Of a DNA stretch of 64,000 nt, positions 1 to 63,520 are shown piece by piece (the stretch's first letter is position 1; each line of letters starts with the position of its first letter). A model generated the notes under the pieces. The model saw only the letters and a list, made by a program, of their open reading frames with translations. It did not search any database and was not told where the DNA came from. The DNA comes from Perna viridis (Eukaryota). The position numbers and the translations under genes were made by a program. The stretch lies in the NCBI GenBank assembly GCA_037379345.1, contig CM074511.1, forward strand, positions 25,775,171 through 25,839,170. The letters are read 5' to 3'.

Positions 1-1312
1 ACTGAAGGAAAACAGAACACCTCCATCATCAGACTTGTTGGCAATTTTAGTCAAAAATTCAAAGGTAATGTTAGGACCTACAGTTGTGTATAAGTCAACC
101 TCTCCATATATTATAGATGAAGCAAAGTTCAAGCTGTATCCACCAACATTCTGTGTTTTGTAATAGATAAATGGGTAGTAGATGAACTCATCACAAGGTA
201 CGACAACAAATCTTGACCATTCAAAAGAATATGGCAGAGACATGTTTTTGTTTGGTGAGATGCCGCTGATTTGCAATGTGTATGCCTGGTATGTTGATTG
301 TGGAGTCTGTGTTGGTCCTGTGTATACACATACATTTGGAGAGAAAACTTCTTTGTACAGTAATGATTCGATTTTAAATGTTGAGTTGCTGACTCCTGAA
401 CCTCCGAGTATTCCACTTGTGGTGCTGACATACTGATGACTCAATATAACTTCCATAACAAGGTATTGCCCTTGCAGCCTTACACCAACTTGAGCTTGGT
501 CTTCAATCTTTATCTTCAATTCATCGATGTCAATCCTTTCTAAACTGAAACCCTTGAAGTACAATGGCTCATCAACTGTGGTTTCTTGGTCTTCAATGTA
601 AACAATAGGTTTACTTGTTTTGAGTCTTGGAGTCTTGAATGTGATGGTTGAAAATCCTGCTGAAGTATCCCCAAGTCTCACCGATAAAAATGTGATGCAG
701 GTATGGTTCTGATGACACGCTACTAGTTTTCCCTGAATGGCAATGACATCACTTATGGTAAGCAATGAATACACCGCTGGTTCTCTGACGATAAAGCTCA
801 AACCATCCAAATTTGTCATGTGACCTAATTGACTTGCCAGGGCAATGGACTGATTACCAGCGATGGTGTTTTCTGCTACAGCACAGTCAGGTCCGATCCA
901 GCCATCAGTACAGACAGAACAATCATCTGCACCTTTTCTGTTGAGTGGACAGTCACATGATCCTGTTTGATCACATGTTCCATATCCTGAGCATGGAGAG
1001 GCGGCTCCCCCGGGACATTCTGTGTCACATGTCGTATTCCAATATCCTTTGTTACAAACACATTCAGTGCCTCCATTTTTGGTTCCAAAATAGCAATGTG
1101 GATCACAGTGGTCCCCAAACACTGAGTTAAACGCAGCATCATTTGTCATTTCAGTACATAGTGACAGTCCTGGCCAGATGCTTAATTCAAGGATATATTG
1201 GCAATAGTCTGCATACTCCAAGATGGTATCTTCCAAGTCTTCAGGATCTTGCGCTTGTTCACATTCATACTTGTATTTCTGATTCAAACCACTTCCTGCT
1301 GGTGTACAGGTG
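1..1312 (-). CDS. Exon 42 (runs off the window): C8-like, EGF, VWD6, start of LamG6
   Basis: Acceptor tttcag; 437 stop-free codons read by hand to position 1 (TCTPAGSG...CPGGAASPCSGYGTC...GHMTNLDG...ITFEFLTK); missed by the ORF track because it has no stop. Confidence 0.9.
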
Positions 1313-7300: not shown

Positions 7301-10300
7301 CCACAGAAATAGTTGGAAATACCTGGTAAAACTGGTTGAACTGTAACTGAACATTCTTCTCCATACCATCCAGGAGCACATGATGTGCAATTCGGAGCCG
7401 CCCAGTTCATTTGACATTTACAATCACCAGTAAACTGGTCACATTCTCCATGCCCGTTGCACATATTGTGAGTACCACCATGACATCTCTTGTTACAGGA
7501 AGGTCCCCAGTATCCTGTTTCACATGTACAAGAGTTTGATCCAATAGATTTATGAAAATCACATCTCTGTGAACAATCATTACCAACCCATCCAGGATAG
7601 ACAAGGGAGGCGAAATCATTACAGTAGTTTTTTCCTGGCCAGGCTGCTGTCCATTTAGATTTTACAAAAAGATCTGCCAGGTTTATGACAATAGTCAGAG
7701 ACATGTCAATTTTACCAGAGCTAGCAATATCACTTGTACACGCAGCAAAGTAGAAGTTCAATGTTCCACAACTTGGTCCTGTAGTTTTTCCAAGAACAGA
7801 TTGGAAAATTAATGTTCTACATTTGGTATCCGCCTCTTGTTGTTTAGATAAGTCAGTATAGGTATGGAAATATGGCACTGTTGGTGAATTAATCTGAAGA
7901 CTTGACACTCGCCATTTTATTTTCTGTCTTAGAACTCCATAATCAACTACTTCAATGTGGTGTTTACCTACCACATCATAGATAAGTGATGATCCATAGT
8001 CATCAAACTTCCAATAGATTGCAAGAGAAGTAGTGGTCGTTTCAACTCGCTTCATCTGGTATTTGAGAACGTCATTGTACGACAAAGCTTTCTGCCACAC
8101 TCGGACTTCGTCAATATCTCCAGTATAATATTTGTGGTATGCTTCATTATCGGATGGAAGAGGGGGCTGCGGTGGTTGACCAAAACCAAAGTAACCATAG
8201 GCCACGAACATGTCCTGATGATTTATGGTAAATGATATGAAGTTAAAGCTTCCAGTTTCTTTGAACAAGTAGAAAACCATTTGTGATGATACGTGGAGCC
8301 ATACAAGAGTTACATGATGCCACTTCTCAAGCGTTGCATTAATCCCTGTGTTATAAATGTTTTGACCGATTTTCAGTTTCAATGTGTTTTCTAAGTAAAC
8401 AATGAAGGACAGTTTTGTATTGTAAGACATTATCACGCCTGTATTATCACCAGGTCTGAAGAAAAACTCAACAGAGAAGTCGTTTCCACTTCGGATAATG
8501 CCTGGAAGAAAATCGGTAGTTAAGACTGAGTCTTGAAAGTAAATGCAAAAGCCTGCTGTAGAGACTTGTCTCATTTCCATCAACTCATTGTTAGTGAACA
8601 TCAATGTAAACAAACTGTCAGGTTCGGTGACAACCCAAGTATTTGAGTATGTGTCTGTGCTGGTTACAGATGGGTCACATGGGCCACAGAGGTAATCCTG
8701 TGTCTTACAGAATGGTGTTTCAGTTAGGACAATTATATTCAGTTGTTGCTGAAGTGATCTGACTGATATTGTTAGGTGGTTGCTAGACTTGGTTGTTATT
8801 TCGAATTCTGATGTGGTTGGATGATACACAACTATGTCTGTCAGATGCCTTTCTAATTCTCCATCAAATGTGAATGACTGTCCGTCAATCCAAATTAAGG
8901 TGTCTTGATTTGAATGATATCGTGCTCTGATAACGACAGTATTTGACTTGTACTTGATAGATACAGCTGCAATGCAAATCGAATCATCATAGCAGTAAGT
9001 ATTTCTGATTTGAACTTCTGGGTATATGCTTGTGTCTGATGATTTGAAGATGTAAAACTCCCCTGTCTGTAAGAAGTTAAACTGTAACTCATTAAATGTC
9101 CGCAAATGACTGTTCCCAAATAGTGCACATGTGTAATTCTGTAAATTTGGGGTACCAGTTGGTGGGATTACATCTGGTATAATGACATCACAGTCATTTC
9201 CTGTCCATGGCTCAAGACATGTCGCACAGTCAGTTGTATTCGAGTATGACGGATAACAATAACATTCCCCAGTGGCTTTCACACAAAGTCCATTATTATT
9301 GCAAGGTGAAATTGTACCACCTGTACAAACGCCACTACAGTCATCGCCCCAGTAACCATGGTTACACTCACAAACCAAATCGTTGTTGATATGTCCATGT
9401 TTACATAAATGTGAACACAGCAGATTAAAGAATGGATTGGTACTGTCGGTACATAGTGATGGTCTAGGTGATATCGGTGGGTTGGCTATTTTTTCACAAT
9501 ATTCTATATATGAGTACACACTAAAAATATATGCTTTCTCACTTGATGATGCAATAATATCTACAACGCACGACTCATAATGGTACTGCAAGACTGCATC
9601 GCCAAGTTGTCCACAGACAGATGACAGAGCAGAGTCAAGCAAGTATTCTTTACATATTTTTTTAGCAGTTGTTGTCAAGGTGTCGTTTGGTTTTGCTTTT
9701 GGTGATTCTCCATCGGTAACTACATCTGACTGCCACCAATATACATCATCGGATGGTAGAATAAGCTGATATTCTCCAATCACATCTCGAGCAACAAAGC
9801 CATGACCTTTGGTGAATATCCATAATGATGTCAAGTCTGTAAATTTCTTCGACAATAATCTTTTAGATGTAAACAGTATCTCATAAACATCTAGGGCAAC
9901 TTTCCATGTTTCAATTTCAGCTATTTTACCATTGAAATGCTTGAATGATATAGGAGCATTGTCCTTCCAGTCACCAATTTTCAGAAAGCCACTGTTCTTG
10001 AGTGCTGTAGTTTGAACTGTCAACTGGTGCCACCATTGCATGCCAGATGATGTAAAAATGTAGATCTTCAAAGTTCTAGTGGCATGAACAAATGACAGAG
10101 AAATTTGGTACCAGATATCAACTTCAGCTGCATAACCAGTATCTATCTTTTCATCACCCCAAAGTACATGTACCGTGCCATTTAAGTAAATGGATACTGA
10201 GGTTCCCTTGTAATATGCCATTATTAACCCTTCGTCTGATGTGGCAGCAAATTTGACTTGTATAGTTGCATCCCCAGATGATCCAAACAGATTTTCAAGC

Positions 10301-13300
10301 TGTGATGTATATGCTCCAGTCCCGTTGAATGCAAGGACATAGGTTTCTCCATTGACACTTTGTGGTTCTTCGATGCCACCAAACACATACTTAAAGCCAG
10401 ACCCGACACTTGAATCAATCCTCCAATAGTCTGCATAGCGTGTGTTGATGATCTCCTTTGTGATGTCAGTCATTGCTACTGTAGATCCTGCTCCTATGGC
10501 AAAGTCATTGTTCTTGTTGCTATCACAAATACCACAGAGACCAGACATACCTGAAGTACATTGTGTTAGTGTTGCATATACTTCAAGAACTGAACTGTGA
10601 TAGACGATTGTAATAACATTAGATCCATATTCTAAGTTGACTGACGTTTCCCCATTTTGGACTACCTTGACAGTTGATGTCAAACTGTGGTTGCTATCCA
10701 GAGTTATTTCTTGGTTGTTGTGAAGCATAAGTACACCACTTTGTCCTGGTACTGCTGATACTATTGTAAAGTTTTCACCCTGAGTATGGATCCAAATTTG
10801 ATTCACACATGATGCTCCATCTTGACCACATGGAATCTGTCTTATGTAGACAGCGACTGTAGTATCTTTGACAAAGACGAACTCTCCATTGGCTGTAAAA
10901 TCGAACGTTTGACCATCAAACAAAGTATAATGGCCGTAGCCAAAGGCTGAACATACTTTAGCTGCAATACCTGATGATGGAATATTTGCTTGACTGACTG
11001 AGCAATCTTTTCCATACCATCCTGTTGCACAATTTTCACAATTACTACCAGTAAAATTTGGTAGACATTCACATGTACCATTAGAGTGGCAGGTTCCTCC
11101 ACCACATGGCAAACCAGCAGAGTATGGACAAATATTTTGACATGAAGTACCCCAAAATCCATCATGACAGTCACAGATTGTGTTCCAATCACCAGAGACA
11201 CAGGATGTAGAGCAGGAATTTCCAGTCCACCTTGGAAACTGTCTAGTTTGGAAAGAATCACACCATGTCCTGGCTGGCCATGTAATAAGTGATCTATCGG
11301 TTGAGCAGTGGTCTGATAATGTGATGATCGGTTCCATCGTCCAATCTTTGTCTGTCATGACATGGCCGTTGAAAACACACTGCTTGTACAAATAAAATTG
11401 AACTTGCGAACCATAACTTGAGCAAGAGTTATTGTATGCTGCAGACATAATTGTTGACAGGCATATGTCCTTTATGTCATTGTTCTTATCACTTATACTT
11501 CTGAAGATGTTGTAAATCTGCTTGTCTAGGGATGTCAAGGTGTAGTCTACCAAGTTCCATTTTGGATGCAGCCAAGGTGTTCCTACCATTGTAATTTTCA
11601 AGCCACCAATAGAGTCAACTAGTTGTCGACCATATCCTAGATTGAAGTTCCAATGGTTTACTAAACCTGTGTATGAATTTGTCAAATGAATGAAGGCATA
11701 AGTCCTTATTTGGTTTAATGTCAGCTGTTTCTTCCAGATTCTGAAGTCATCAAAAGTCCCAATAAAACCCCAATTCACTCCATCTCTTTCACTTAGTGGA
11801 TAATTCCACTGACCAATCATAAATGTTCCTCCAGGTATAAATGGATTGGGGTCTGAAGCTGGAAAAACATGGACATCAGTGTTGATTTGTAAACTTTCCT
11901 GAATAAGATAAAGGTTGATAATTCTAGTGTCTAGTCTCCATACAAAGGCAAAGTGGTACCATGTGTCTTTTTCAACTGTTAAAGATGCAAATGATATTTT
12001 CTTGTCCTGGTAATAGAGTGTCATTTTGCTGTCACAGATCACAGTTGTAAAAACAAGGTTGTCTTTTTTATATGACCAGATTGTATAGCATCCTGGGCTT
12101 ACAACTGATGATTTGAACTTTAGTTCTACTGTGGTGACAAATTCAGTGAATGTTGATATCGGTTCTGTGAGGCAATTTGAACCATTAGTAAAGAGACCAA
12201 AACCTCCACTGTTTTCGATAGATACTAGTCCATGAAATATTGAGTTTGACTCTAAAACAAGCCAGGACTGACCAAAGATATCATGAATAGAGTCTGTGTT
12301 CAGTGTTACAGTACTATTTAGAACTACACCCGTCTCTGTCTTGAAATCATCTTCATGGTTCAGATTACAACTGCTGAGTAAACCTGTTGTAGTACCACAG
12401 AAAGTTGAAACGGATCCAATATACACATCGAGGTGGTTCTCAAACAGATAGATATCCACTGTCAGATCACTTCCTACTATTTGGTAATGGTAACTGGAGA
12501 CTTGTTTACATGTGACTCCAGAAACAGTGAATCCTGACCCAATTACAATCTTGTTTCCATCATACCAGGTAGAGACCACTTCATCTAACACAGATATCAC
12601 TAGCTTGTGACTGTCAATCTGTATACCAACAGCTGCAGTTCCAACACTGGCGTAGTATTGTGACATGAGAACCTGAAGTATGTGGATTTTGATCTGAATT
12701 CCAGATAGCAGCTGGCCTGATACCAGCAAGTGTTCTCCAGGATAGTGATAGTTGTACGCAGCACCATCAAAAGTAATGAAGTGACCACTGTGGTAGCATT
12801 TTCCTTGGAACTTGTCTCCAGCTTTATTGTCATTGTTTACATGAACCACTGAGCAATCTTTTCCGAACCACCCCGCCTTACATTGCTCACAATTAGTTAT
12901 TACTTCTGGACCAGCATAACAGGAGCAGGTACCAGCAGCAGGATCACAGATTCCATTGCCATAGCAAGCATTGTTAGCCCCACCTGGACATGTGTTCTGG
13001 CATTCTGATCCCCAGTATCCTTCCTTGCACTTACAGTAACCAGTCTGGTCATTCAAAACAGGCTGAAAATAAAATTGATCTTTCTCATCATACTGTATAT
13101 GGGAATTTAAGTAGAGAATAACATACTTGCAATTTTTTTCCATTCAAATAAGTTTTGGTACTAACAGCATATGACCTTCAGCCCCCCCAAAAAACCTGTT
13201 TTGTTTTATAAAATTGTTCTGTTTTGTTTTGCATTATAAATCTCTTCTTGTTCAAAATCCTCTAAGTAAACCTACTTAATATTACTGGCATGCAGGGGCG

Positions 13301-52300: not shown

Positions 52301-55300
52301 CTTACAAAGCATTGGAACGTTTGTATTCAGCATTTTACATCAATGTCATGTAAGCATCAAAGCAACTTAGATTTGATTTCATTCTGTGTCAAATGAAAGC
52401 TTGGTAGGCTTTGGTAAAATTGAATATGATACATACATATCACTGACTTCATGGGTTATGTCCCTTACCCTAGGTCTACCTTCTCAAAAGGTGTCAAAAT
52501 AATGATAACTAGGAGGTTAAAAGTAAACAAGATATTGGAGTGTTTAATAACTTTTATATGCATGCTTTGAATAATATGTTTCTTCTATTGTAAAGCATTT
52601 CATATTTTTGCATTCTTATTTTTGGCATTTAAGGATATCAATCAAATTTTACTTATGTTTGTTATCAAGATTAACACTATACACTCAAAATGTATTCCAT
52701 AACAAAAGAATTTATTTGTGGACATTTATTTTTGTGACTATTTGTTAGCACAACAAATTGCTCTGACACCAAAATAATTTAGTTTCAATATCATAAAGAG
52801 ATAAAACCTCACCTTTGAACTCATAAGCATAACAAATTGTTCTGACACGAAAATAATTTAGTTTCAATATCATAAAGAGATAAAGCCTCACCTTTGAACT
52901 CATTATTAGCACCTAGTAACTCAACTGTCTTTGGTAACCTTGCCTCCCCATGTTCATCAATGTGTAAACTGCAGGTTAGTTTGCTGTATGAGCTCTCAAC
53001 ATCAGCACTGAATATCACATTATCCTGTACATTAAGGAGGGAATTTGCACCACATACCAAGGTGGATGCTATCACATGAAGACCCGCTGTTGTAACTTTT
53101 ATTGTTGTCTTGTCTCCAACCTCCATCTCATCAAGTTCAACTAGAGGGGTACCAGGTGTATCAAAATAAGTAGCGGCGACAGTACTTCCTGTGACCATTG
53201 AGTTGGAAGTAAAAAGTTTACGGAACTGGATATTGCCGTAAGGATATTGGAGGTATGCTGTACCAGAACCACCAGCTTGAGCTGTGTCTGAGTTACCTCC
53301 CTTTAGTTTGTAGTCACCAGTATAGTTATAATCACCAGTACACATGAGGTAAATCCTACCACCACCTCCACCACCACCACCAGCGATAGCATTCCCACCA
53401 ACAACAGAAACTGATCCTGCTCCTAACATGTCTACAATTTCAATAGAAACAGACCCACCACTCCCTCCTCCACCACCATTCATACCACTGTTACCATGGG
53501 AACTAATCACTCCATCCAAGGTCAGTTGTTTTGTGACCTTCAATTTTACCATGCCACCTCCAGGTCCGCCTACACCTGATAAAGACTTGTTACCACCAGT
53601 GGATCCAAAGGCATCAGCAGTGAATAGACTTCCTGTGTATTGTTTGACAGTTGTCCCACCAGAGCTGGAAGTGCCTCCAGAACCACCATGACTTCCTCCA
53701 GAGCCATCTTGACCAGCCCCAGTCCCAAGGTTACCATTGCTTCCATCAACACTTAACAAGCCATCATATGCAACCTGCATTGTTGGAACTTGGATGAATA
53801 AGTGTCTTGCACTAATTTCTCCTCCATACTTGATATTCAATTCATCCAGTACATCTAACGTATATTTACTAGTTGAGTCCTGAGACACTTCAAGCTTTCC
53901 ACCAGTTGTTATTTCCAATTGAGTTAGCGAGAATGTTCCAACATCAGAGGGTTGTGTTGTTGTTAGACCACTGCGAGCACTGTAACTTAAGTAAGCCTTA
54001 GAATTCACTCCCACAACAAGATTTCTCAGTGCGATCACATTTCCTTGTACATCTAGGTTATATTCATCATCATCTGTGTCATCCTCCAGTAATAATTGAG
54101 CAGGTAGGGTGGCATATCCTCCACCTTCAACAACTAGTTTACATGGCAGAGAAAAGGCATACTGTGTTCCATAGCTAGTGGCAATGACAAAGTACTGCCC
54201 TGACTGAATTGTCAGTAAACCCGTTTTATCTCCTTCCACTAGCTCTATCTCTACATTTGGAGAACCACTGGTGTCAAAGATAAGCTTAGACTTTCCTGTT
54301 ATTTCAAGTTCTGACACTTTTATGACACCATTAACAATTGTCCGAGAATCTGTAACTAGGCCATCATTGTAAATAACCAATGCAGATTTTGATGCACCAC
54401 CTGTGATTTGGTACAACTTATAAACAGTCCCAGCAGCCCCACTGCTTTTCCCACCTCTTCCGCCTTTTGCTTCAAGGCCACCATAAAATGAGGTCACCAC
54501 CTTGACATCTAGAGCAAGACAACCTCCACCTCCACCTCCCTTGTTGGTACTACTTCCTCCATTTACAGAAATAATTCCATGACCTTCAAGACTGTCACCT
54601 GTGACCTTAATACTGCCTCCACTGCCTGCACCAGTTGAGAAGCTACTCTCACCATCAGCTGATATGACACCATCGATGGATAATGTTGTAGCCTTAATTG
54701 ATATTACACCACCACCACGAACTGTTGAACACCCACTGCCAACATCTGTTGGTGAAGTTGTTGAACCATATGTAGTGCCTTGATTGTCTCCCCCTTCTCC
54801 ACCATGGCTGGCTCCTTTCTCTGCATCACCTGCTCCCAAACCTAAAATAATCAACACAGTGGAAAGTTTCAATGGTGCCATACTCTTGTTAATAATTTCT
54901 GCATAAACAACATACTACACTACTGAACAATTTACACAAACAGATAAATTCAATCAATTCTTAAAATCCCAATTTTTTTTAGAACTTATGTTATTTTTTT
55001 AAGGCCTTGCTAATCTAATTATTTCAATGAAATCTGCAATACCATAACCCATCATAACAATATACTGTTACCATACCTGTTAACCCTCCCACAGTAAGGG
55101 GAATTCCCACATTATCAATGAAAAAAATTAGAATCTCCCACATAAAAATGTTAGATTTGTGGGAGGTTTTTGGCAAAACTTACCAAGTTTTCTGTGGAAA
55201 TTACGAAGTAATTGAATTTTGACATAAACAATATATGTTTATGCAAAAATCCCCCACATGAGTCTGTATCAATGGGGGAGTCTCCCACATGGACTGTTCC

Positions 55301-58300
55301 AAAGGTTAACAGGTATGCTGTTACTAAAAAATATTGCCTTACTTACCTGTTAATGACCCACTACCAGAAACAGACAATACAGCATCATCCTCAATAATAA
55401 CATCAGTGGCTTCAAGGTTTATAGTCTTAGTGGCTGATCTAATATCTAATGTTGATTTGACCTTCATGTGGAACAAAGTCAAGGTCAAACTTAAAGGGTC
55501 ATCATACACTACTAATGTGGAATTATATCCAAGTGTAAGTGATTGAGCATTACTGTATATAGCTCCTGGTTTCAAATCTAATGTTGAATATTCATGTAGA
55601 GTCAGAGAGTTGACTTGTAGGTTTCCAGTATTTTGGACTGTCACAGTTCCATGGTCCCAGATTCTGAATGTATTCGCTATTAAAGACCCTGCAAGATTTA
55701 GAGTTGGATTATTTCCTGTGAAGTCAAAATCAGTGTTAACCTGAAGTGTTGATCCAGCTTTAATGTCAAAGTTACACTGACAACCATGATTAAGGTCATC
55801 AAATGAGGATATTGACAGTTTAGAATTGTCAGACAATGTGACAGTTCCTGATCCATCTGACATCAGTTTACTGACAGCTAGGTCTGTTGTAAGTGACAAA
55901 GAAGTTCCATTGGTCAGCTGGACTTCATTCAGTGAGCTTGGAAGTGAAAGTCCATCCATCAAGTCTATAGTACCAGCCTGGTTCAGCAACAGTGTGGTAT
56001 ATGCTGACCCAGAAACTGTCTTAGAAACATACACAGTGCCTGAAAATTGAATTGCAAATATTAACGACTATGCATTTAGAGTTTATAACCTTCAACTCCA
56101 TAATTAAACTTGCTTAAACTGTCAAGTTACCCCCACAAGAATTTCAATAGATGAACTTCAAACTATTTAAAACTTGTTTCAAAATGCTTGTGATAAGCAC
56201 AGTTAATTTGGAGTAAACTTAGATTAACAAACAATCTAAAGTATTTCTTAAGAACTTACAGGCTTAAGTGAGTTTTAAACATAGTTCAGTTGTATAAAGA
56301 AAACATTCAATCACATGATTTCAGTTTTTCAAAAATGTTCATTCATGCTGTCAAAGAATGAAAATTTATTCTCAAAATAAGAAAATAAAACAAACTTATG
56401 GATCAATTATTCATCATTCCAGAGTTGATAATATTAACTAACCAGGTGATGCACCATTGCCAGATGCTGACATTAATCCACCATAGCGGTAAGCCTCTGA
56501 CACAGTCACAGATATCCTTCCACCTCCACCTCCCCCTGACCCACCATTGGCTGACAATGTACCAGTACCGGTCATATCCTTAGTGGTAACTAGTATGCTC
56601 CCACCGCTGCCACCAGAGGTTGATGAATCAAATCCACTCACGTCAATATCACCATTCAATGTGAACTTATTGATAACTACAAGTTCAATTTGGCCTCCAC
56701 CAGTTCCTAAAAATGATGATGCACCATAACCATTACTTCCATAAGCCTTTGGAGAGACAATATTTCCATAAATTTTTCCTACTGGATTAGCAATATTCTT
56801 GCCTGCACCACCATGACTCGCACCAGATGAACTAACACTAGGCTCGCCTGGACCTCCAGAAACATAACCTTTACCCTTTCCATCTATGACCCCACCATAC
56901 TTAATTTCGAGGTTGGTGACTGTGATTTTGGTGAAATTTTTACCTTCTGGGTCTCCTGTTAGGATAAGCTTACCACCAGCTTCTATGACAATGCTGTTAT
57001 ATGAGTAGGCCTTGGCAGCCAGTTCACATTGTGTATCTCTGTAGATGAGGAGATCTGTTGTGCTATCACAAGTTGCATTCAACAGTGGACTAATCTCACT
57101 GGTGTGTAAAGCAACCACATCAATTGGATTAGAATTGATAGTGTAGCCAGCTGACACATTTAAATGTTCTAACTGTAAAGTTGTAGACTGATCAGACCTC
57201 ATGCATTTGGATGTGTGTTCAAACTTCCCATTGTAATCTATCACTAATGATTTCCACACCAGTCGACTATGGGTGTTAGTACCAGCATAATAGCTGTTTG
57301 TCTGGGCTGGATTTCCTATTTGTACGATACCAGAATCTCTAACAAATACATTGTTTGTCTTCAACATCAACGTACCACAAATCTCCAGAATGTGACCTCT
57401 TTCAACAATGACATTTTCAGGTAGCTCTAATTTACCATAATTACTAATGTGAATGGATGATTTAATTGAAAGCTCTGATACGGCTGATGGATATTTGGTT
57501 GAAACGTAGACTTCATTAAATTTGTCTACGGTGAAGTTTGACTGTGTTGTACCAGTTATGTCCCCTACTGTAACACTGAGAGCAGCGCCAATATCTGGTC
57601 TGGTAGTAAAGGCAACATTATCGTCAGTCTGGATGTCAATTTGGTCAATTTCAACAGAAAATTCTGTAGATGGTACAGGAATTCTACTAACAGCATCAGT
57701 TGGTACGTCATTGTTGTTAATTATAACCTATTAATGGATAAATGCTGTTTTATATTTTTGGTCATAAAACATTTGGCAACTTTTCATGTTTAAAAATCCA
57801 TTTAAGTATTACATGTACAAAAATAAATTGCTGTTTTAAAAGTTTGTCTTTTGAAATATTTGTGTGGTAGCTTAATATTTTCATAATACAGACATTTCTA
57901 AATATTTGTTTGCATATAACAAAGTAAAACATTTAAAAAAAAAAAATGTCTTCATAAAGCTACTGTCAACCATGATAATCCTGAAGTTCACAAAAACTCA
58001 TTTTCAAGGAAATTTAATCAAAAACCTCTCAATCTCATTTATTAGTGGTAGATTTCTTTTTTGTCACAAATAACAATTAACAAAATGTTGAAATCATTGT
58101 AACCTTTTATTTTTGCCAAAATTGAAATTTTAAAATACATTAATTCAAACTTGCATTTTGGTCTTTAATTGTAAAATTGTAATGATAAATGCATTTAAAT
58201 ATATTGATTTCTAAAATTTCTGTAAACTTTATACATGTATATCACTGAAGACTAACCTTTCTATCTGGTGAAAGGGAGTTAATATCCTTGGCAAGGTAGA

Positions 58301-61300
58301 TAACTCCAGCTGCACCATGTTGCCCATTGCCATTGCCATGACCTCCATAGGCCATGAGGTTACCTTTAATGTTGCCATTGGTGTATTCAAGGGAGATAAT
58401 TCCACCACCCCCGCCTCCACCATCAATACCATTACCGCCATTAACACTTATTTTCCCTATAATTATATAATACTAATGATGAAATAATTTAATTGTCATG
58501 TGAAAATATTAAATATATAATGAGCAACTAAAGCCTGAGAAATACCAAGCTCTATGAAGTTCCCAAAATACTGTCTCTTTTTCCAACTATTTCTTGATTT
58601 TTTTTTTCTGAACCCCTCCATTTTGAAAGTGTAATTTGACTAGTGCAATTTGAAACAAGGAAATAGGAGATTTTCCATATGTTGGTATAACTGAGTTATG
58701 ATTTCATTGAAATACACTAAAATGAACATTTCATAGGGCAGATAACTCTGTCAAATATCTCATTTTTCTATAAACATTCTGATGAAATATTTCTGAGCAA
58801 ATCCAGTGATACAGAGATTAAACAATGGTCTTTTCAAATAAACAAAGCATCTTTGAGTGAAATTATATTGTAAGATAGGTGGTGTTTTGACAGGCATGTT
58901 TCAGAATTTCCATTTTGCCTGATTCTTACAAAAACTTACACATAAACCGACCAATATGATACCCCTTCTTTCAAGATTTTTTACCTGTAACATCAATACT
59001 TGTTGCTGCTGAGATCCATACTCCACCACCAGAACCTCCTCCACTGGCTGATGTAGCACTCTCACCACTGAAAAAAAAACAGTATTGTTAAAAGAGACAT
59101 GACACAAAATTTTTTTTTTCAATTCTTGGTTTATTGGATTTATTACACCAAATATATATCATAAAAACGTCCCTTGTAGTCACATACGTCATATAAATAA
59201 TTAATTAAAGATAAATTGATTCAAAATCGACGATGAACCAAGCCATACAAATTTTAATTAGCCATGTGGTCACATGACCATGCTACATCATTGGTTCTCA
59301 ATTCATAGATCGAGTAGTTGAAATGCGTGGGGCTCCTGCACTTTTTACATGATTTCAACAACTGAGAGGGAAAATATTGAAAGTTTATATACTTACAGTT
59401 GTATCAATTTAAACCACTTCGAGAAGAAAATGATAAACAATGACAGAAATATTTAACTACTTCATGTATGAAGACTATGTGAATTGTTTTATTTCAAAAT
59501 TTGTAAGACAAAAGAAATGCAATTATTTTTCAATTATCCAAGTTATACACCTGTGTTGACACCTGTGTCACGAGGTGCCAAACCATGTTAAGATAAAAGA
59601 AGCCGCCTACACTTTCTCTTTGCCATAATTAAGCCTACCGGGCTTGCTAATTGTTATAACCTAGCATCAAAGAAAGAACGATACACAGAGTGTCATTATT
59701 TTAGTTGTACCCTCCTGTTCAAGTCCTAAAATAGTGTGCAAAGTAGTTGCATTTTCGCCAGGCGGGAATGTATGCCTAAAAAAATGAAAAGCTGAAGGAA
59801 AACAAGAAGAACTTTAGCCTTCTTACTTTTTACACATGAATATTACAATCATACACAGATCATTAGACCACTCTGCATCATATATGCAAGCTATTTTCAA
59901 AGATTTATTAATTTTTTCGGGCATGTGTATATATTTTCGATGCACCCAAATGGAGATTGAGAACCAATGACATAGCACTTCCATGTATGGTAAGTGAGTG
60001 TTATTAACTTCCGGATTTCATTTATGCATATTAATTAGATCGTCATGATAACACAAATAAATCATTCTAACTTTACTTAGCCCTAACCTGATGAAAAAAC
60101 GTTTGTTACACTCCTATCTAAACATACTCTAGTTTTTATAAATATAAATGTTTAAAAAATGATATTTTTGCATCACGTCTCCTTTAAGAGACACAAATAT
60201 CACATTTTCTGTCCTTTTCAGCCATGAAAAATTTTCTCCAATCTTGATTATCTGAAACTCTCCACATACTATGAGTAAAAAGTGAGATACTGCATTACAA
60301 AAAAATTCCACATTGAATCAATCAAGTCATATTCTACAATTCTACATTTTCCTAAAGTCCACTAATTCAAAGAGAAACAATGTCCAACTTCATAAAACTT
60401 AATTTGAAGTTATCCCTAAGTCTTTCTTCCACTCAATTTTCAACCAATCAGCGTGCTTATTTATTGAAATTAGAGAAAAAAACTCAAGGATTTGAGGACT
60501 ATATCAATTTAAGTTTCTTTCATGATACCTGAACATTGAAAGGAATGATGAAGTCAGAAACCTAACACTAAATATATATCCTACTTACTCTGCTGTTATG
60601 TCCCCTTTATGAACAACATTGGCAGCTTGGATATGGAGTAATCCTCCTCCTTTAGTGTTATCTCCACCAGATCCCATGTACATAGGTTTCTGGTAGGAAT
60701 CGTAAGCAGCTCCACCAGAGTAATCACTTATACCCCCTCCTTCACCAGCATGGCTAGCTCCAGCATGGTTCGTACCTGCTCCTTTAATTTAGATTTTTAA
60801 AATTACAACATGAAGATGCACATATTATAGTGCTAGGTATACCCAACTTGTACAGCCATCCCACAAAACAGGAAGTCGATACATGTATTGGAAAGACCAA
60901 ATTTGCTCACAACTTATGCACCATCTATATCAAATTTGAAATAATGTATGCCCAATAGTGCAACAATTTTTCTGAATCAATAATGGCTGGCTCAGAAAAT
61001 GATTTAAAAGTTCCCTAAGAAATCAACCAAATTTTGCACCAATTGAAAGAGTTATCTCCCTTTTCACTTTTTATGAGCAACTCGGCGGGTGTTTTCTAGA
61101 AAAGCAAAGAAGCTTACCCTACCGGTGCACCTGGTCCATGCTTCCAGTTTTTAGTGGAGTCCGAGTTGCTCATTTACTTTTGTTACTTTGTATGTATGAT
61201 TTTAGTTACTTTATGTTCTTTGTTGTGAATGTCTGTTTTCCATGTCTGGTCTTTGTCCCTGGATTACATTCTTTTGATTACCGCTATAACCTTGGTTCCC

Positions 61301-63520
61301 TTGATTACTCTTTCAATGAATTTCAATGCTTTCTATGTTATTTATTTCTCTTTAACCATTGCAGTTAATCAAAAATCAACATTCAACTTTGAGAAAGGAT
61401 GCATTTGGGATATGAAATAAATGAGACAAAATTTTTTGCCTAGTTTTTGCATGGACGCCTTCTTAATTCTTATACATTATGCAGTACTAAGCACATACAA
61501 TTTATTCATGAAGAATTCAAAATAAGTGTGCAGATGAAATAAATTAGAAATTAATTTTAATCCTTAAGTAATATTTTTCTTACCATCTCCACCATTGATG
61601 TCAGATCTAGCATTAAGATTCACTATGCCACCTTCTTCAGATTCAAACTTGGATGAAACTTCCATTGATAGTTTTGCTGCTGAAATTTCACAAGATGCTC
61701 CTAAAAATAGCTCAGACAATGCAAAGTTATACTGGACATCATCAAACAGTATCAATTTACTTCCTTGTTGTAGTTTCAAACTGGAAAGCTGGAATGCAGC
61801 TGCTGTTCCATGTGATTTGCCAGTCTCTTTAATGTCTGTTGTTGTTCTTATCATAGTTAGATACTGTAGGCCACCTAGTTTACCATGGACCAAGTTGTTG
61901 GTGCCATACCATTTCACCTCTGACGGGAGAGTCAAGGTTCCGTCAGTGTAGACCTTAGCATGAGCTGGGAAATACAGTGATACTTGCCGAATGGTTATTA
62001 TTTGATGAATACCAACATGAATGGTTCCAATCTTATCAATGTTGGTAACAAAGTCACTGTCCCCAGAGAAACTCTGAACTGTCAGAGTATGGATTTCAGA
62101 AGTGCTGGTACTAGGTTCCAATGCTAAATGTGCTCCATTTCGCAAGTGAAGCTCACTGACTTCCAGAGTGTTTGAGGAGTCTAAGGGTACCCATGTTCTA
62201 CTGCTATCACTTCTGGAGATTGTGTCAGAATCCATATTGTCAATCAATTCCTACAATTTTTTTTAATTTACCTATTACCTAATAGTGACTTTTTCTCAAA
62301 AATGTACAAGTGATACTGTGTTTGCAAGCAAAACACAAAAGTCGCCAAAACTGGCAAATGGTCAGGTTTAGTCAAAATCTGATGCTGCCACTGAATTTAA
62401 AATGTAATGTTTATCTTATAAATCAGTTTTCATTGAAATCCAACTATGTTGATATTTTGCCAATTTTGGTGGCCATTTAAAAAAAAAATAGCAGCTTTCT
62501 GACAAAATGTGAAAGTGCCATTGAATTTAGAATGTCATGTTTACTCTAGATATCAATTTTCATTGAAATCAAACGATGTTGAAATTTTGCCAATTTTGGC
62601 AGCCTTTCTAAAAAAACTTTTTTATGCCTTTGATGTCAGCAAGCTAAGATATTTTCATATAATTAATGAGTTCCACTAATTTTATAGAATTTTTTTGTCA
62701 TTTTTCTGGGTTTTGTTTTCGTGGCCATTTTGAAATTCCGTAAGTTGTTTGCACATCCCCTGAGCATGCTTGATTTTTGAGCCAAGTTTGGTATGCATCC
62801 AATAAACAGTATCTGAGTATTTGTCTGGACATCTCTACATTCAGAAGAAGAGAAAAGCAAAAACAAATAAGTCGCAAAACTTCGTTTTGGCAACTTAATA
62901 ATAGACTAATTTCAAAATCAGGAATTTTTTATGTCATTTTCTAGTATTGAGTTACTATAACACACAAATCTTTCATTTCCTGGAGACCAAAACAATGTCT
63001 TTTTCTCTGACACTGATATGGTTATGGATTTAAAACATATCTGTACTTCAAATGGACAAAATTAGACTAACAAATATCTGGTAAGAAATGAAAAATAAAG
63101 TCCTCCCACCCGCCCCATATTTTTTGTAAAGGATGAATGAGAATCTACCATTTAGGTTTACTTAGCCTAACATAACAACTCTTATACTTCAGTCTAGCTG
63201 TGAAATTGTAGCTCTTGATTTTTTTTTTTTTATTTTGTGATCTAACGTTTCAAAAATACCAAAAAAAATAGTTAGAGCTACTTTTCGCAGCTAACTTCAG
63301 TCATGTGTATTCCATTAAGAGATACTCACAGCAACAGAATGGACCTCATTGTTGTTTACAATGAGTTTAGTTTTGGACCCTGTATCAACATAGATGGTTC
63401 CTGCTCCACCATAACCAGCTGATGACGGACCACCATGAGCTTGGAATTGACCTGTGAACTCTGATGATGTGTAGTACACAGATAGACGACCACCAGCTCC
63501 ACCTCCTGAACTACTGCTGC
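1..63520 (-). CDS. Giant multi-exon gene, partial at both ends: extracellular protein >11,800 aa with 17 Gly-rich modules, an EGF-like array and >=6 EGF-VWD-LamG-C8-like units
   Basis: 42 exons with canonical AG/GT boundaries; intron phases and exon lengths are consistent at every junction; coding total 35,531 nt; conserved motifs read straight across junctions (e.g. ASP-G|GTVYV, WNR|YLG). All long ORFs in the track belong to this frame. Confidence 0.9.
2135..2381 (-). CDS. Exon 41: contains KRRKR, start of a C8-like domain
   Basis: ORF 2116-2397; acceptor ttgtag, donor GTATCT; phase 1 to 2. Confidence 0.85.
2801..3196. mobile_element. TTAA-flanked MITE with imperfect TIR
   Basis: TTAA|GTAGC-N8-TAAGAATCATGCAAAAT at both ends in inverted orientation. 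Confidence 0.65.
3216..3313 (-). CDS. Exon 40 (YLGLMEIKNHW...LSSLWTFNEE)
   Basis: Acceptor gtttag, donor GTATTT; phase 2 to 1; matches the LamG C-terminal motif of the other units. Confidence 0.85.
3578..4680 (-). CDS. Exon 39: basic VWD, Thr-rich linker, LamG/pentraxin-like domain
   Basis: ORF 3574-4707; acceptor ttgaag, donor GTGAGC; phase 0 to 2; FEGCIDELRIWN. Confidence 0.9.
4860..5127 (+). repeat. Dispersed repeat, second copy at about 58670-58946
   Basis: Shared CAGATAACTCTGTC..AATGGTCTTTTC..CCATTTTGCCT.ATTCTTACAAA. Confidence 0.65.
5362..13062 (-). CDS. Exon 38: 7.7-kb exon with four EGF-VWD-LamG-C8-like units and the start of a fifth
   Basis: ORF 5326-13143; acceptor tttcag, donor GTAGGT; phase 0 to 0; VWD starts GHFITFDG, GHYTLFDG, SHLRTFNE, GHITTIDG; LamG-like motifs FIGTFDDFRIW, YTGDIDEVRVW. 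Confidence 0.95.
13942..14059 (-). CDS. Exon 37 (SESGTAIVRWVVSS...KCPSVPIV)
   Basis: Acceptor ttgtag, donor GTATGT; phase 2 to 0, exactly bridging exons 36 and 38. Confidence 0.8.
14312..14683 (+). mobile_element. Dispersed element with a ~180-bp fold-back at its left end
   Basis: Homologous to 22631-23408; arms AATAAGATAATTAATTGG / CCAATTGATTATCCTATT. Confidence 0.7.
14901..15186 (-). CDS. Exon 36: start of an unassigned domain (PVFRCYTEESDGNYTAWFGYNN)
   Basis: ORF 14897-15196; acceptor ttgtag, donor GTAAGT; phase 1 to 2. Confidence 0.85.
15550..15663 (-). CDS. Exon 35: EGF/laminin-EGF-like
   Basis: Acceptor ttacag, donor GTAAGT; phase 1 to 1; CQCHDDDINGHWTGSACDEC. Confidence 0.87.
15887..16210 (-). 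CDS. Exon 34: EGF-like
   Basis: Acceptor ttgcag, donor GTATGA; phase 1 to 1. Confidence 0.87.
16548..16796 (-). CDS. Exon 33: EGF-like
   Basis: Acceptor tttcag, donor GTAGGA; phase 1 to 1. Confidence 0.87.
17168..17333. repeat. Fold-back repeat with ~54-bp arms and a central ATGAACAGCCGAAGGCAGTTCAT hairpin
   Basis: Arms 17168-17221 and 17279-17333 are near-perfect reverse complements. Confidence 0.8.
17978..18154 (-). CDS. Exon 32: EGF-like
   Basis: Acceptor tttcag, donor GTAAAA; phase 1 to 1. Confidence 0.87.
18656..20398 (-). CDS. Exon 31: long EGF-like array
   Basis: ORF 18606-20417; acceptor ttccag, donor GTAAGT; phase 1 to 1. Confidence 0.93.
21552..21722 (-). CDS. Exon 30: EGF-like
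   Basis: Acceptor ttacag, donor GTGAGT; phase 1 to 1. Confidence 0.87.
22167..22335 (-). CDS. Exon 29: EGF-like
   Basis: Acceptor tgatag, donor GTGAGT; phase 0 to 1; GWYSEDCSKPCVHG. Confidence 0.85.
22355..22539. repeat. ~93-bp tandem duplication next to the exon 29 acceptor
   Basis: AAATGCAATTCTTGAGAACA...AGAGGTTCCAAGTCAACCA..ATGATGC occurs twice. Confidence 0.85.
22631..23408. mobile_element. Same family: forward copy interrupted by an inverted copy (about 22966-23365)
   Basis: The forward copy breaks after GTGAATTATTGAAATT and resumes at TTACACTAGGAAC...CTATCTATATA; the intervening DNA is the reverse complement of a whole element. Confidence 0.7.
23682..23788 (-). CDS. Exon 28: EGF-like
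   Basis: Acceptor ttgcag, donor GTAAGT; phase 1 to 0; GWTGDACDIPDCPGGC. Confidence 0.87.
23949..24610 (-). CDS. Exon 27: EGF-like repeats
   Basis: Acceptor ttaaag, donor GTAAGA; phase 2 to 1. Confidence 0.88.
25200..25341 (-). CDS. Exon 26: EGF-like repeats
   Basis: Acceptor ttctag, donor GTAATA; phase 1 to 2; GCESATHTCTCRPGWTGIGC. Confidence 0.87.
25671..26083 (+). mobile_element. 5'-truncated retroelement 3' end, longest copy (probably Penelope-like)
   Basis: 25671-25817 encodes LTNRLLEQGYVATRLKSSLHKFYGRHHELVDRYSVSICTMKTDLFNGS*, which resembles the C-terminal tail of mollusc RT ORFs (recalled); the 3' part is shared with three other copies. Confidence 0.7.
26377..26667 (-). CDS. Exon 25: EGF-like repeats
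   Basis: Acceptor ctttag, donor GTATAA; phase 1 to 1. Confidence 0.87.
26953..27414 (-). CDS. Exon 24: EGF-like repeats
   Basis: Acceptor tttaag, donor GTTTGT; phase 1 to 1. Confidence 0.87.
27759..29367 (-). CDS. Exon 23: last (Cys-decorated) Gly-rich module fused to the first EGF-like repeats
   Basis: ORF 27748-29379; acceptor ttacag, donor GTAAAT; phase 0 to 1. Confidence 0.93.
29792..30069 (-). CDS. Exon 22 (GAGSGGRISI...GPGTVYVQ)
   Basis: Acceptor tttcag, donor GTAAAA; phase 1 to 0. Confidence 0.87.
30588..30738 (-). CDS. Exon 21 (ELRLDGTIKTTG...GSGGSIMM)
   Basis: Acceptor ttacag, donor GTAAGG; phase 0 to 1. Confidence 0.85.
31250..31463. mobile_element. Second, more diverged tandem copy of the TTAA MITE
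   Basis: TTAA-flanked, same internal sequence. Confidence 0.8.
31490..31701. mobile_element. MITE with TTAA TSD and GG..CC ends (Kolobok-like)
   Basis: TTAA|GGAGGTAGACCTAGGGTAAGGG ... CCCTTATCCTAGGTCTACCTCC|TTAA. Confidence 0.85.
31955..32088 (-). CDS. Exon 20 (GGHGHDSATAGSQYGS...)
   Basis: Acceptor catacag, donor GTGATT; phase 1 to 0. Confidence 0.8.
33070..39294 (-). CDS. Exon 19: 6.2-kb exon with five Gly-rich modules
   Basis: ORF 33059-39352; acceptor tatacag, donor GTATGT; phase 1 to 1. Confidence 0.95.
39653..39949 (-). CDS. Exon 18
   Basis: ORF 39645-39959; acceptor ttttag, donor GTATGT; phase 1 to 1. Confidence 0.85.
40250..40607 (-). CDS. Exon 17
   Basis: ORF 40236-40619; acceptor caacag, donor GTACAA; phase 0 to 1. 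Confidence 0.83.
41200..41561 (-). CDS. Exon 16 (GSFRGHG...GAGGRIAV...GPGTVFVE)
   Basis: Acceptor ttttaag, donor GTAGAG; phase 1 to 0. Confidence 0.85.
42094..42327 (-). CDS. Exon 15 (YGSLYKPNETGS...GGGSGGSIWI)
   Basis: Acceptor tcacag, donor GTATTG; phase 1 to 1. Confidence 0.85.
42505..42826 (+). mobile_element. Retroelement 3' fragment, copy 2
   Basis: High identity to 25775-26083; same 3' end CCCTTGATTACTCT. Confidence 0.75.
43153..43324 (-). CDS. Exon 14 (DIKYSALFKAD...GAGHATIGGG)
   Basis: Acceptor ttttag, donor GTAAGT; phase 0 to 1. Confidence 0.85.
44315..48327 (-). CDS. Exon 13: 4.0-kb exon with three Gly-rich modules
   Basis: ORF 44297-48244 extended to acceptor ctttcttttcag; donor GTAAGT; phase 1 to 0. 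Confidence 0.93.
48685..48914 (-). CDS. Exon 12 (YAFSGTITAYGG...GPGTIYIQ)
   Basis: Acceptor ttttag, donor GTATCC; phase 2 to 1. Confidence 0.82.
49368..49524. mobile_element. Fold-back MITE (PIF/Harbinger-like ends)
   Basis: GGGGCCGGTTTCATAAAACATCTCAAACTGAGATTTTCC ... GGAAAATCTCAATTTGAGATTGTTTTATGAATCCGG. Confidence 0.6.
49643..49826 (-). CDS. Exon 11 (GAIKVDG...GGGSGGTIF...GGGSGGRMKL)
   Basis: Acceptor ttatag, donor GTATTT; phase 1 to 2. Confidence 0.85.
50426..50558 (-). mobile_element. Degenerate inverted copy 4 of the same retroelement tail
   Basis: Reverse complement matches TTTCCATGTCTGGTCTTTGTCC..GGATTAC.TTCTTTTGATT. Confidence 0.6.
50677..50881 (-). CDS. Exon 10 (ISSHDLATGAGYASLGG...GGAGGGYLKI)
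   Basis: Acceptor ttacag, donor GTAAAG; phase 0 to 1. Confidence 0.85.
51178..51353. mobile_element. TA-type MITE; related copy at about 1905-2062
   Basis: CCGTAAACATA...TATGTTTACAG|TA; shared core ATTAGCGTT.TATAGTGTTAAA. Confidence 0.6.
51553..51893 (-). CDS. Exon 9
   Basis: ORF 51532-51927; acceptor ttacag, donor GTAAGT; phase 1 to 0. Confidence 0.88.
52271..52483. mobile_element. Third copy of the TTAA MITE
   Basis: TTAA|GGAGGTAGACCTAAAGTAAGGG ... CCCTTACCCTAGGTCTACCTTC. Confidence 0.8.
52746..52903. repeat. 79-bp tandem duplication covering the exon 8 donor site
   Basis: Two copies of AGCA.AACAAATTG.TCTGACAC.AAAATAATTTAGTTTCAATATCATAAAGAGATAAA.CCTCACCTTTGAACTCAT. Confidence 0.9.
52892..54841 (-). 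CDS. Exon 8: two Gly-rich blocks
   Basis: ORF 52821-54881; acceptor ttttag, donor GTGAGG; phase 1 to 1. Confidence 0.9.
55072..55317. mobile_element. MITE with perfect 14-bp TIR and 7-bp TSD (P-superfamily-like)
   Basis: CTGTTAC|CATACCTGTTAACC ... GGTTAACAGGTATG|CTGTTAC. Confidence 0.85.
55347..56039 (-). CDS. Exon 7: spacer region
   Basis: ORF 55339-56034; acceptor tttcag, donor GTAAGT; phase 1 to 1. Confidence 0.9.
56443..57727 (-). CDS. Exon 6: one Gly-rich module
   Basis: Extends ORF 56438-57370 upstream to acceptor taatag; donor GTTAGT; phase 0 to 1. Confidence 0.9.
58257..58456 (-). CDS. Exon 5 (GKISVNGG...GAAGVIYL)
   Basis: Acceptor ttatag, donor GTTAGT; phase 1 to 0. Confidence 0.85.
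58985..59067 (-). CDS. Exon 4 (DGESATSASGGGSGGGVWISA)
   Basis: Acceptor ttttcag, donor GTAA; phase 2 to 1. Confidence 0.85.
60589..60781 (-). CDS. Exon 3 (GAGTNHAGASHAG...YDSYQKPMYMGSGG)
   Basis: Acceptor ttaaag, donor GTAAGT; phase 1 to 2. Confidence 0.85.
61066..61311 (+). mobile_element. Retroelement 3' fragment, copy 3
   Basis: Same 3' end, shorter 5' extent. Confidence 0.75.
61584..62250 (-). CDS. Exon 2: beta-rich spacer of a Gly-rich module
   Basis: ORF 61564-62247; acceptor ttgtag, donor GTAAGA; phase 0 to 1. Confidence 0.9.
62330..62899 (+). mobile_element. Helentron/HINE-like non-autonomous element
   Basis: Internal ~130-bp tandem repeats (62422, 62552), terminal palindrome GTCGCAAAACTTCGTTTTGGCAAC followed by TTAAT, and a matching AAGTCGCCAAAAC near the left end. 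Confidence 0.5.
63330..63520 (-). CDS. Exon 1 of window: end of Gly-rich module 1 (SSSGGGAGGRLSVYY...GAGTIYVD)
   Basis: Acceptor ttctag, donor GTGAGT; phase 1 to 0; absent from the ORF track. Confidence 0.85.

Follow-up and report, generated by a model that had tools for sequence, protein, structure and literature searches.

Background

In von Willebrand factor (VWF) and the mucins, D assemblies drive calcium- and pH-dependent, disulfide-linked assembly. In Drosophila, Dumpy is a giant EGF-rich, membrane-anchored apical-matrix protein of more than 20,000 residues, with DPY modules and a ZP domain. Other surface proteins that bear on the present case are the tenascins and teneurins, which share a compact type of EGF repeat; the beta-helical adhesins of bacteria and fungi (SRRP, Awp1/3, tapirin, pertactin, Ag43 and EtpA/HMW1), which are elongated surface rods; and the animal surface beta-helix proteins fibrocystin/PKHD1, CEMIP and TMEM2. 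Here we describe a locus of the mussel Perna viridis in which parts resembling several of these systems appear to be joined in one gene. The window, that is, the whole stretch of DNA analysed, is 64 kb long (C1:25,775,171-25,839,170), contains no N and has approximately 37% G+C. Unless a C1 position is given, coordinates refer to this window, with negative numbers for positions below it and a plus sign for positions above it.

Our reading, to which we assign a probability of roughly 0.6, is that the window forms the middle 64 kb of a minus-strand gene of about 159 kb whose product is a single transmembrane glycoprotein of type I, about 21,500 residues long and about 2.3 MDa in mass before glycosylation. 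From its amino terminus the protein would consist of a signal peptide, a first glycine-rich (Gly) core, a discoidin domain, about 30 more beta-helix modules of roughly 400-425 residues, about 48 EGF repeats, a small junction domain, about nine pentraxin-bearing D assemblies, one transmembrane helix and, at the end, about 470 residues of tail. An earlier annotation of the window (the sequence-only reading) had proposed one giant protein with Gly-rich, EGF and VWD/LamG parts in this order, and the exon chain, a fusion exon and the RNA joins described below all support that order. A giant single protein also remains the outcome here, at a modelled length about twice the figure that was put forward then. 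Dumpy is similar in scale, in its EGF-rich stalk and in its C-terminal anchor, yet it has neither beta-helix modules nor D assemblies, and we draw a functional analogy only and claim no homology.

An open chain of exons across the window

The long open frames of the window, those of 2,605, 2,108, 1,352, 697, 609 and 544 codons among them, all lie on the minus strand. Exons were joined with a chainer written for this work, which combines codon-usage log-odds with splice-site scores, takes GT..AG introns and tracks phase. The first pass chained 40 exons, with 11,760 aa, from 63520 to the window start and left one stop, which was traced to a wrong donor at 41964; when the donor after 42094 was joined to the acceptor at 41561 the stop was gone and the repeat consensus SIWIITGSFRGHG was restored. 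A second pass, for which the site matrices were retrained, split codons checked and a retroelement (discussed below) masked, resulted in 45 exons with 11,860 aa inside the window and recovered 7/7 of the RNA-supported junctions. Only a few small exons distinguish the two models, and the 42 in-frame exons and more than 11,800 aa that had been called from the letters alone fall between them. The chain shows exon continuity within the window. Database, family and fold searches were run exon by exon, and the joined model was used for stop counts, lengths and module spacing.

The Gly-rich and EGF parts meet within a fusion exon at 27759..29367 on the minus strand, which is exon 23 of the first pass (29367-27759), as the sequence-only reading had also numbered it. 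Its single frame, 27751-29382, contains the last Gly core (...GGGAAHGGHGG...GSGGGS...AGSGGSALRVV...GAGSGGSVWMDS...AGGGGGRIRTF...) and, straight after it, the first EGF repeats (CNGRGTFLSGSCTCNSGFVGSDCQYYC...), over which Pfam places EGF_TEN and EGF_Teneurin at residues 356-543 of the frame. The fusion of both module types inside one ORF is therefore as it was claimed to be.

The EGF stalk that begins here (15550..28317, minus strand; model residues 13,591-15,314) consists of 1,724 aa with 290 Cys, and comprises approximately 48 repeats of the tenascin/teneurin type encoded in about 13 exons. Pfam matches to it are EGF_TEN (7e-53) and EGF_Teneurin (1e-38), plus EGF_2 and EGF_Tenascin. The likeness to tenascins and teneurins lies in this compact EGF type, and a sea-cucumber relative is labelled "Tenascin-X" in UniRef. 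Unlike the tenascins, the scanned exons of the mussel gene have no fn3 or Fibrinogen_C match; unlike the teneurins, they have no NHL, YD shell or toxin domain, and the predicted topology is type I where that of teneurins is type II. The EGF stalk is followed, ahead of the first D assembly, by a junction domain of about 135 aa (13942..15186, minus strand), Cys-poor (...YTAWFGYNNTNDHNVYL...) and without a Pfam match. Its two small exons, 15186-14901 and 14059-13942, join in frame and are confirmed by RNA.

Splicing from the EGF stalk into the D-assembly region

Sequence words of the window are present in 20 public runs from six studies, and 14 small runs contain 42-51% of them, approximately the share of the window that is exonic. 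We aligned the contigs of four runs, from four studies, to positions 12700-18699. The contigs skip seven intervals with CT..AC ends, which are GT..AG on the minus strand, and so define the minus-strand joins 13062/13942, 14059/14901, 15186/15550, 15663/15887, 16210/16548, 16796/17978 and 18154/18656 in these four studies. Because the contigs are intron-less with canonical ends, we take the four runs to be RNA.

Two of these introns, both GT..AG on the minus strand, connect the EGF part to the VWD part through the junction domain: 14060..14900 (junction 14901/14059) and 13063..13941 (junction 13942/13062). The sequence-only reading had singled out these two junctions as those on which a single protein depends, and each is spliced in one contig from each of the four runs. 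The five 3'-most junctions of the EGF stalk are likewise carried by RNA contigs, including those around an EGF-coding exon of 114 nt (15550-15663, minus strand; all four runs) that sits between exons 16210-15887 and 15186-14901. Single contigs of 11,088 nt (run X1) and 14,892 nt (run X9) cross from the EGF stalk into the VWD exon, and the latter should, judged by its length, extend into the fusion exon and the last exon. When the validated exons and their neighbours are joined, 3,594 codons are read without a stop. The link from EGF to VWD is transcribed and spliced.

Within the same aligned interval, three intronic stretches (13300-13499, 14300-14699 and 17300-17699) had a summed contig depth of about 100-2,600, compared with 5-57 for exons, in all four runs. 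Many loose ends in these stretches run into unrelated sequence, and they are probably fragments of abundant transcribed repeats.

Gly-rich modules with a predicted beta-helix fold

The beta-helix region of the window (28318..63520, minus strand), as delimited by open frames and a profile, holds 16 complete Gly-core modules and one partial module in about 23-28 exons, with the cores spaced at about 370-425 aa. Its giant exons, seen as open frames on the minus strand, are 39294-33070, 48327-44315, 54841-52892 and 57727-56443. Across the joined model the Gly-core profile gave 33 matches, equal to 31 modules, from residue 92 to residue 13,602 and across about 90 predicted exons, mostly 370-470 aa apart. 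A module period of 520 aa was ruled out by the profile, which sets it at about 400-425 aa. The core consensus is G.GHGG.GG...YGS...P...GSGGG...GG.GGG...L.vDG.isa.G...GGGSGGSI.i...G.G.I.a.GG.G...GGGG.GGRIA...G.y...GG.G...GT.Y, and 15 of the 16 positions that are invariant across 14 copies are glycine. Genome-wide, all Gly cores lie in the window locus or in its mirror-image locus, which is described below.

We modelled a segment of 531 aa, or about 1.3 modules (36596..38188, minus strand), with AlphaFold2, using an alignment with 27 further sequences. The prediction is all-beta, with a mean pLDDT of 90.2 and a pTM of 0.86. Compared by VIA-align with 48,161 chains, it matched right-handed parallel beta-helices almost exclusively, with 44 chains at Z >= 8. 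The best match was the binding region of the Lactobacillus SRRP (5nxk; Z 12.5, 200 residues, 3.6 Å), and others included Candida Awp1 (Z 11.0) and Awp3b, tapirin, EtpA, HMW1, pertactin, VacA p55 and Ag43, as well as tailspikes, pectate and alginate lyases and TMEM2 (Z 8.7). The model clearly predicts the Gly-rich module to be a right-handed parallel beta-helix, a match in fold that does not show kinship to any one of these proteins. Foldseek found no significant match for the same model, and neither a single-sequence nor a profile search of the PDB found a relative of the module.

Family databases are nearly silent on these modules. In the Gly-rich exons Pfam recognised no family except for one weak match to G8, confined to exon 57727-56443 (E 1.1e-5; 25.8 bits against a cut-off of 22.9, with no single stretch passing). 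NCBIfam has no family for the mollusc modules, and two exons gave no match to gliding_AgmC_N (NF047640) at E <= 0.01. The Protein Atlas placed the module with unnamed mollusc clusters and, at 0.90, with a G8 cluster.

With the beta-helical adhesins of bacteria and fungi the module therefore shares a fold (Z 10-12.5), whereas there is no detectable sequence relation, and the mussel protein, predicted to be an animal type I protein, further differs in stringing together about 31 modules in tandem and in lacking the components of autotransporters and of two-partner secretion systems. PKHD1, CEMIP and TMEM2 resemble it as animal surface beta-helix proteins, and one exon gave the weak G8 match noted above; the Z value of TMEM2 lies in the range of a common fold only. 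Unlike these, the mussel protein has no Pfam IPT/TIG or PbH1 match, and the number of modules and the remainder of the architecture are unrelated.

D-assembly units, the membrane anchor and the question of shedding

Downstream of the junction domain, the D-assembly region occupies 1..13062 of the window on the minus strand and comprises the first 5.5 or so of about nine units of approximately 630 aa each. Its chained exons, all on the minus strand, are 13062-5362, one that runs from 4605 or 4680 to 3578, and one that starts at 1312 and leaves the window; the second-pass model adds small exons at 3313-3216 and 2381-2135. The units fill the last 5,500 or so extracellular residues, are 21-26% identical over their whole length and follow one order: EGF, VWD, a pentraxin/LamG insert, a helical C8-like module and an EGF/TIL-like module.

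Pfam VWD (PF00094) matched exon 13062-5362 at E 1.2e-37 in four stretches; counted by unit, four scored higher than the VWD cut-off and a fifth gave a weak match. Pfam did not recognise VWD in the last exon, though the units there align full-length at the identity just given. Laminin_G_3 was found in nearly all units, with EGF types between them, so that the EGF-like, VWD and LamG domains read earlier from sequence all have Pfam support. The C8 domain that was proposed alongside them is a more qualified case: the helical module fits the D-assembly fold, but neither TIL nor, at E <= 1, C8 (PF08742) was matched in the units by Pfam. The precomputed annotation of orthologues lists PF26129, a family outside the Pfam copy scanned here.

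One unit (9244..11346, minus strand; 701 aa) was folded with AlphaFold2 at a pLDDT of 79.1. In the model an EGF module comes first, then a beta-sandwich at residues 130-290 and a jelly roll at 336-540, and after these a helical Cys module at 555-647 and, last, a small module rich in Cys. Foldseek matched it to MUC2 (1e-14), with MUC2, VWF, MUC5AC, MUC5B and FCGBP spanning 1e-14 to 1e-10. Compared by VIA-align with complete D assemblies, model residues 124-701, with the LamG insert skipped, gave Z 25.6 with MUC5B D2, Z 24.9 with VWF D2 and Z 22.8 with MUC5AC D3, the last with 276/331 residues aligned. The insert alone (334-547) matched the LG domain of PAPP-A, PTX3, CRP and the PTX-like domain of ADGRG4 at Z 17-20, and the Protein Atlas placed the unit with generic LamG clusters at about 0.8. 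Because of these fold matches we interpret each unit as a D assembly whose VWD and C8-like modules are separated by an inserted pentraxin/LamG domain. As a whole, then, the unit superposes on the D assemblies of VWF, MUC2, MUC5AC, MUC5B and FCGBP at Z 20-25.6 over 270-300 residues. Unlike those, the mussel units carry a pentraxin/LamG insert in every unit, have no GDPH motif and no Pfam C8 or TIL, and sit in a membrane-anchored protein after beta-helix and EGF arrays. Oyster papers use the name VWDE (von Willebrand factor D and EGF domain-containing protein), and vertebrate VWDE may be considered a candidate orthologue.

The end of the gene lies 7.9 kb below the window, within 30 kb of flanking DNA that was examined on that side. 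The last exon starts at 1312 (open frame from 1419) and runs to -7883 in a frame of 3,101 codons that ends in a stop, at -7884. It encodes one strongly hydrophobic segment, ILLIIIIICCIIPVIILIICCCCW, at about residues 2606-2628 of the frame, which is a transmembrane helix, followed by a Ser/Pro-rich tail of about 470 residues that ends in ...LREDDLREV. We take this tail to be cytoplasmic and probably disordered. The signal peptide described in the next section and this C-terminal helix together lead to a type I membrane protein with approximately 21,000 residues outside the cell.

These results require a revision of the suggestion that the locus encodes a secreted matrix, adhesive or mucus scaffold, in that the protein is anchored in the membrane. 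A version of that suggestion in which the transmembrane form is a mere precursor, and proteolysis releases the ectodomain to serve as the matrix, adhesive or mucus scaffold, deserves consideration: it is through D assemblies that secreted mucins, VWF and FCGBP multimerise, and many giant membrane mucins are shed. We nevertheless regard it as unlikely. No VWD contains a GDPH motif, which rules out GDPH autocleavage; in the exons scanned, Pfam found no SEA, GPS, PTS or cystine knot, so that the PTS region and C-terminal cystine knot of gel-forming mucins were not seen and a transmembrane helix and tail stand at the C-terminus in their place; and the long cytoplasmic tail has been retained. Some shedding of the ectodomain into a matrix may still occur.

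The upstream half of the gene

Above the window, where 90 kb were examined, Gly-rich open frames persist on the same strand to about +151,000. A signal-peptide start is found at +151,115, 87 kb above the window, where MRRLLALLLLLFVGLRYTEA|ATC... is directly followed by beta-helix-like and Gly-rich sequence. It is the only signal-peptide-like start in the 150 kb examined, and a second, internal start was ruled out, there being no other signal-peptide-like ATG. Extension into both flanks thus located the signal peptide and the stop that the sequence-only reading had placed outside the window, and neither terminus lies within it. From this ATG to the stop (C1:25,767,287-25,926,285), the chain comprises about 112 exons and 64,689 nt and encodes 21,563 aa (2.30 MDa) without a stop, with sequons at about 1 per 100 residues. 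We infer the start site and the approximately 67 upstream junctions from this model.

The first Gly core is closely followed by a discoidin domain (F5_F8_type_C), split over two consecutive predicted exons at about +141,950 to +140,825, the first covering profile positions 17-77 and the second 85-124. Its position suggests a lectin-like domain near the distal tip of the protein.

The upstream half is the main uncertainty in our model, and several observations weigh against a single gene of this size. The aligned RNA contigs cover 12700-18699, outside the 87 kb upstream and the Gly-rich exons, and the records of the runs used above are silent on whether they are RNA, so that their RNA nature is only guessed, though the spliced contigs favour it. 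The upstream model comes from a heuristic chainer, and such programs always yield some chain; its two passes disagree on a few small exons, one of which (59361-59349) is only 13 nt long. Among the top 150 relatives no protein is longer than 6,192 aa. Finally, a retroelement on the gene's own strand (+68,790 to +70,979), a frame of 730 codons with RVT_1 (1e-27) and RNase_H, could mark a gene break.

Several of these points would be expected if the locus consisted of two or more adjacent genes, say one upstream for a secreted beta-helix protein and a second, starting near or inside the window, for a membrane protein with beta-helix, EGF and D-assembly parts; the upstream junctions without RNA support here, the same-strand retroelement and the much shorter annotations of all relatives would all fit. 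We consider such a division distinctly unlikely. No second signal-peptide start occurs between +134,000 and +13,000, the stop-free chain exists, RNA or a shared exon connects the parts that lie in the window, and short annotations are expected for a gene of such size. We treat the retroelement as intronic because module spacing is regular across its site, with cores at model residues 6064, 6548 and 6969. That spacing, the split discoidin domain and the comparison of two copies of the locus, to which we now turn, support the upstream model independently of the chainer scores.

A mirror-image copy of the locus

An inverted copy of the whole gene lies on the plus strand at approximately C1 25,552,000-25,721,000, tail to tail with the first and about 46 kb away. 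Nucleotide identity is 98.2% over 4.3 kb, and the proteins are 96-99% identical; the giant exons differ by in-frame indels, at 2,119 versus 2,108, 1,351 versus 1,352 and 1,278 versus 1,281 codons (mirror copy first). For the 5' exon region, the mirror counterpart lies at 25,550,605-25,552,308 (96% identity), and there are additional partial copies at 25,562,835 and 25,570,248. No second copy was found for 4 kb of spacer sampled close to the centre (C1:25,745,171-25,749,170). The mirror copy is either a haplotig or a recent inverted duplication.

At three short pairs of loci, the two copies could be compared by predicted exon and predicted intron. Exons, those compared in the beta-helix region included, showed no indels in 8,243 bases and 0.7-1.4% substitutions, compared with 16 indels in 2,891 bases and 1.7-3.2% substitutions for introns.

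A near-identical inverted copy (about 98%) at a distance of about 46 kb is a pattern that a misplaced haplotig can give, and it could be asked whether the locus is a decaying pseudogene or a misassembly. This is highly improbable. More than 64 kb of coding sequence is read without a stop, the gene is spliced in RNA from four studies, its exons diverge less than its introns and without indels at the compared loci, and orthologous exons are found at 53-86% identity in many species. The gene would be real even if one copy were a haplotig.

Relatives and their annotation

A phmmer search against 1.84 billion representatives gave 3,513 matches, 314 of them below 1e-30, with relatives in molluscs, echinoderms, hemichordates, cnidarians and choanoflagellates. 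Among them are models from Saccoglossus kowalevskii (XP_077861759.1, 4,555 aa), Ptychodera flava (P0007), Actinostola sp., Salpingoeca rosetta (PTSG_13036 and PTSG_11389), Dreissena polymorpha (DPMN_003926 and DPMN_117914), Nucella lapillus (ACOMHN_056872 and ACOMHN_056886), Apostichopus japonicus (BSL78_01924 and BSL78_07888) and Pecten maximus (LOC117331107), the last of which carries F5_F8_type_C. The named relatives are all labelled "hypothetical", "uncharacterized" or "Tenascin-X", and all are fragments. The expectation that automated pipelines would split such a gene is thus borne out, both by the lengths and labels of the relatives and by N. lapillus, in which the Gly part (ACOMHN_056872) and the VWD part (ACOMHN_056886) are separate models, probably both on one contig of 788,033 bases. 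We also sought spliced, RNA-derived proteins for the VWD exon and for the upstream exon of 1,281 aa; the matches at 99-100% were genomic single-exon frames.

The order of the parts is conserved outside the mussel. The Ptychodera model contains a Gly module and then EGF_TEN, and a Tara metagenome scaffold with an intron-like gene structure carries a Gly exon of 1,573 aa and then EGF_TEN exons on the same strand.

The Gly core alone, of about 175 residues, is found in prokaryotes as well. An archaeal metagenome protein of 4,952 aa (P0022) contains 11 copies of the core and DUF2341, and matched at E 1.5e-88 with 42% identity in 11 stretches. We assign its contig to the archaea because its neighbours include S_layer_C, Ribosomal_S8e and eIF-1a (LSM is also present). 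Against NCBIfam the protein matched gliding_AgmC_N at 1.1e-52, below the curated cut-off. In addition, "beta strand repeat-containing" proteins of Verrucomicrobiota and Planctomycetota carry the core. By sequence similarity, then, the Gly core is a repeat shared by animals, choanoflagellates, archaea and bacteria of the Planctomycetes-Verrucomicrobia-Chlamydiae (PVC) group, and one that has no Pfam family. What the prokaryotic giants have in common with the mussel protein is this core, which is recognisable by sequence (GGGSGGSI ... GGGGSGGRI); the spacer of about 230 residues that completes the animal module is not shared with them, and their partner domains differ.

Proposed role and significance

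From the order of its parts we infer an extended shape and, with it, a possible function. The membrane-proximal base of D assemblies with its pentraxin inserts may serve to bind ligands or to connect adjacent molecules, the EGF array may form a thin stalk, and the beta-helix chain may act as a semi-rigid rod with the lectin-like discoidin domain near its tip. With approximately 15-18 coils of 4.8 Å per module, each module would measure several nm, and 31 in line would reach some hundreds of nm. Our best guess is that the whole would be a very long adhesive or apical-matrix filament or tether on the cell surface.

The domain classes involved are known. The literature searches run here turned up no description of this architecture, nor of the family of Gly-core beta-helix modules, which agrees with the earlier statement that no characterised protein was known to have this combination. 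As a tentative proposal, to which we give slightly less than even odds, the protein may represent a previously undescribed class of surface protein that is older than the animals: a tethered filament of about 2.3 MDa with about 31 beta-helix modules, a Gly core shared with prokaryotic giants, an EGF stalk and, at the base, D assemblies that bear pentraxin domains, in an architecture conserved from choanoflagellates through cnidarians, molluscs, echinoderms and hemichordates.

If the full model is true, this would be among the largest of animal proteins, missed because pipelines cut the gene into pieces. It would join three things not known together, namely a beta-helix chain, a tenascin-type EGF stalk and pentraxin-inserted D assemblies, and the first of these would be an animal version of the design used by bacterial adhesins, in a form that has no Pfam family. 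The module would also offer structural work a new and well-predicted repeat family. For marine invertebrates more widely, the protein is a testable candidate for long surface filaments, such as those of the glycocalyx or tethers of the apical matrix. The relatives in choanoflagellates and in multiple animal phyla suggest an old surface structure that predates the animals, and one that bears on how the extracellular matrix and cell adhesion evolved.

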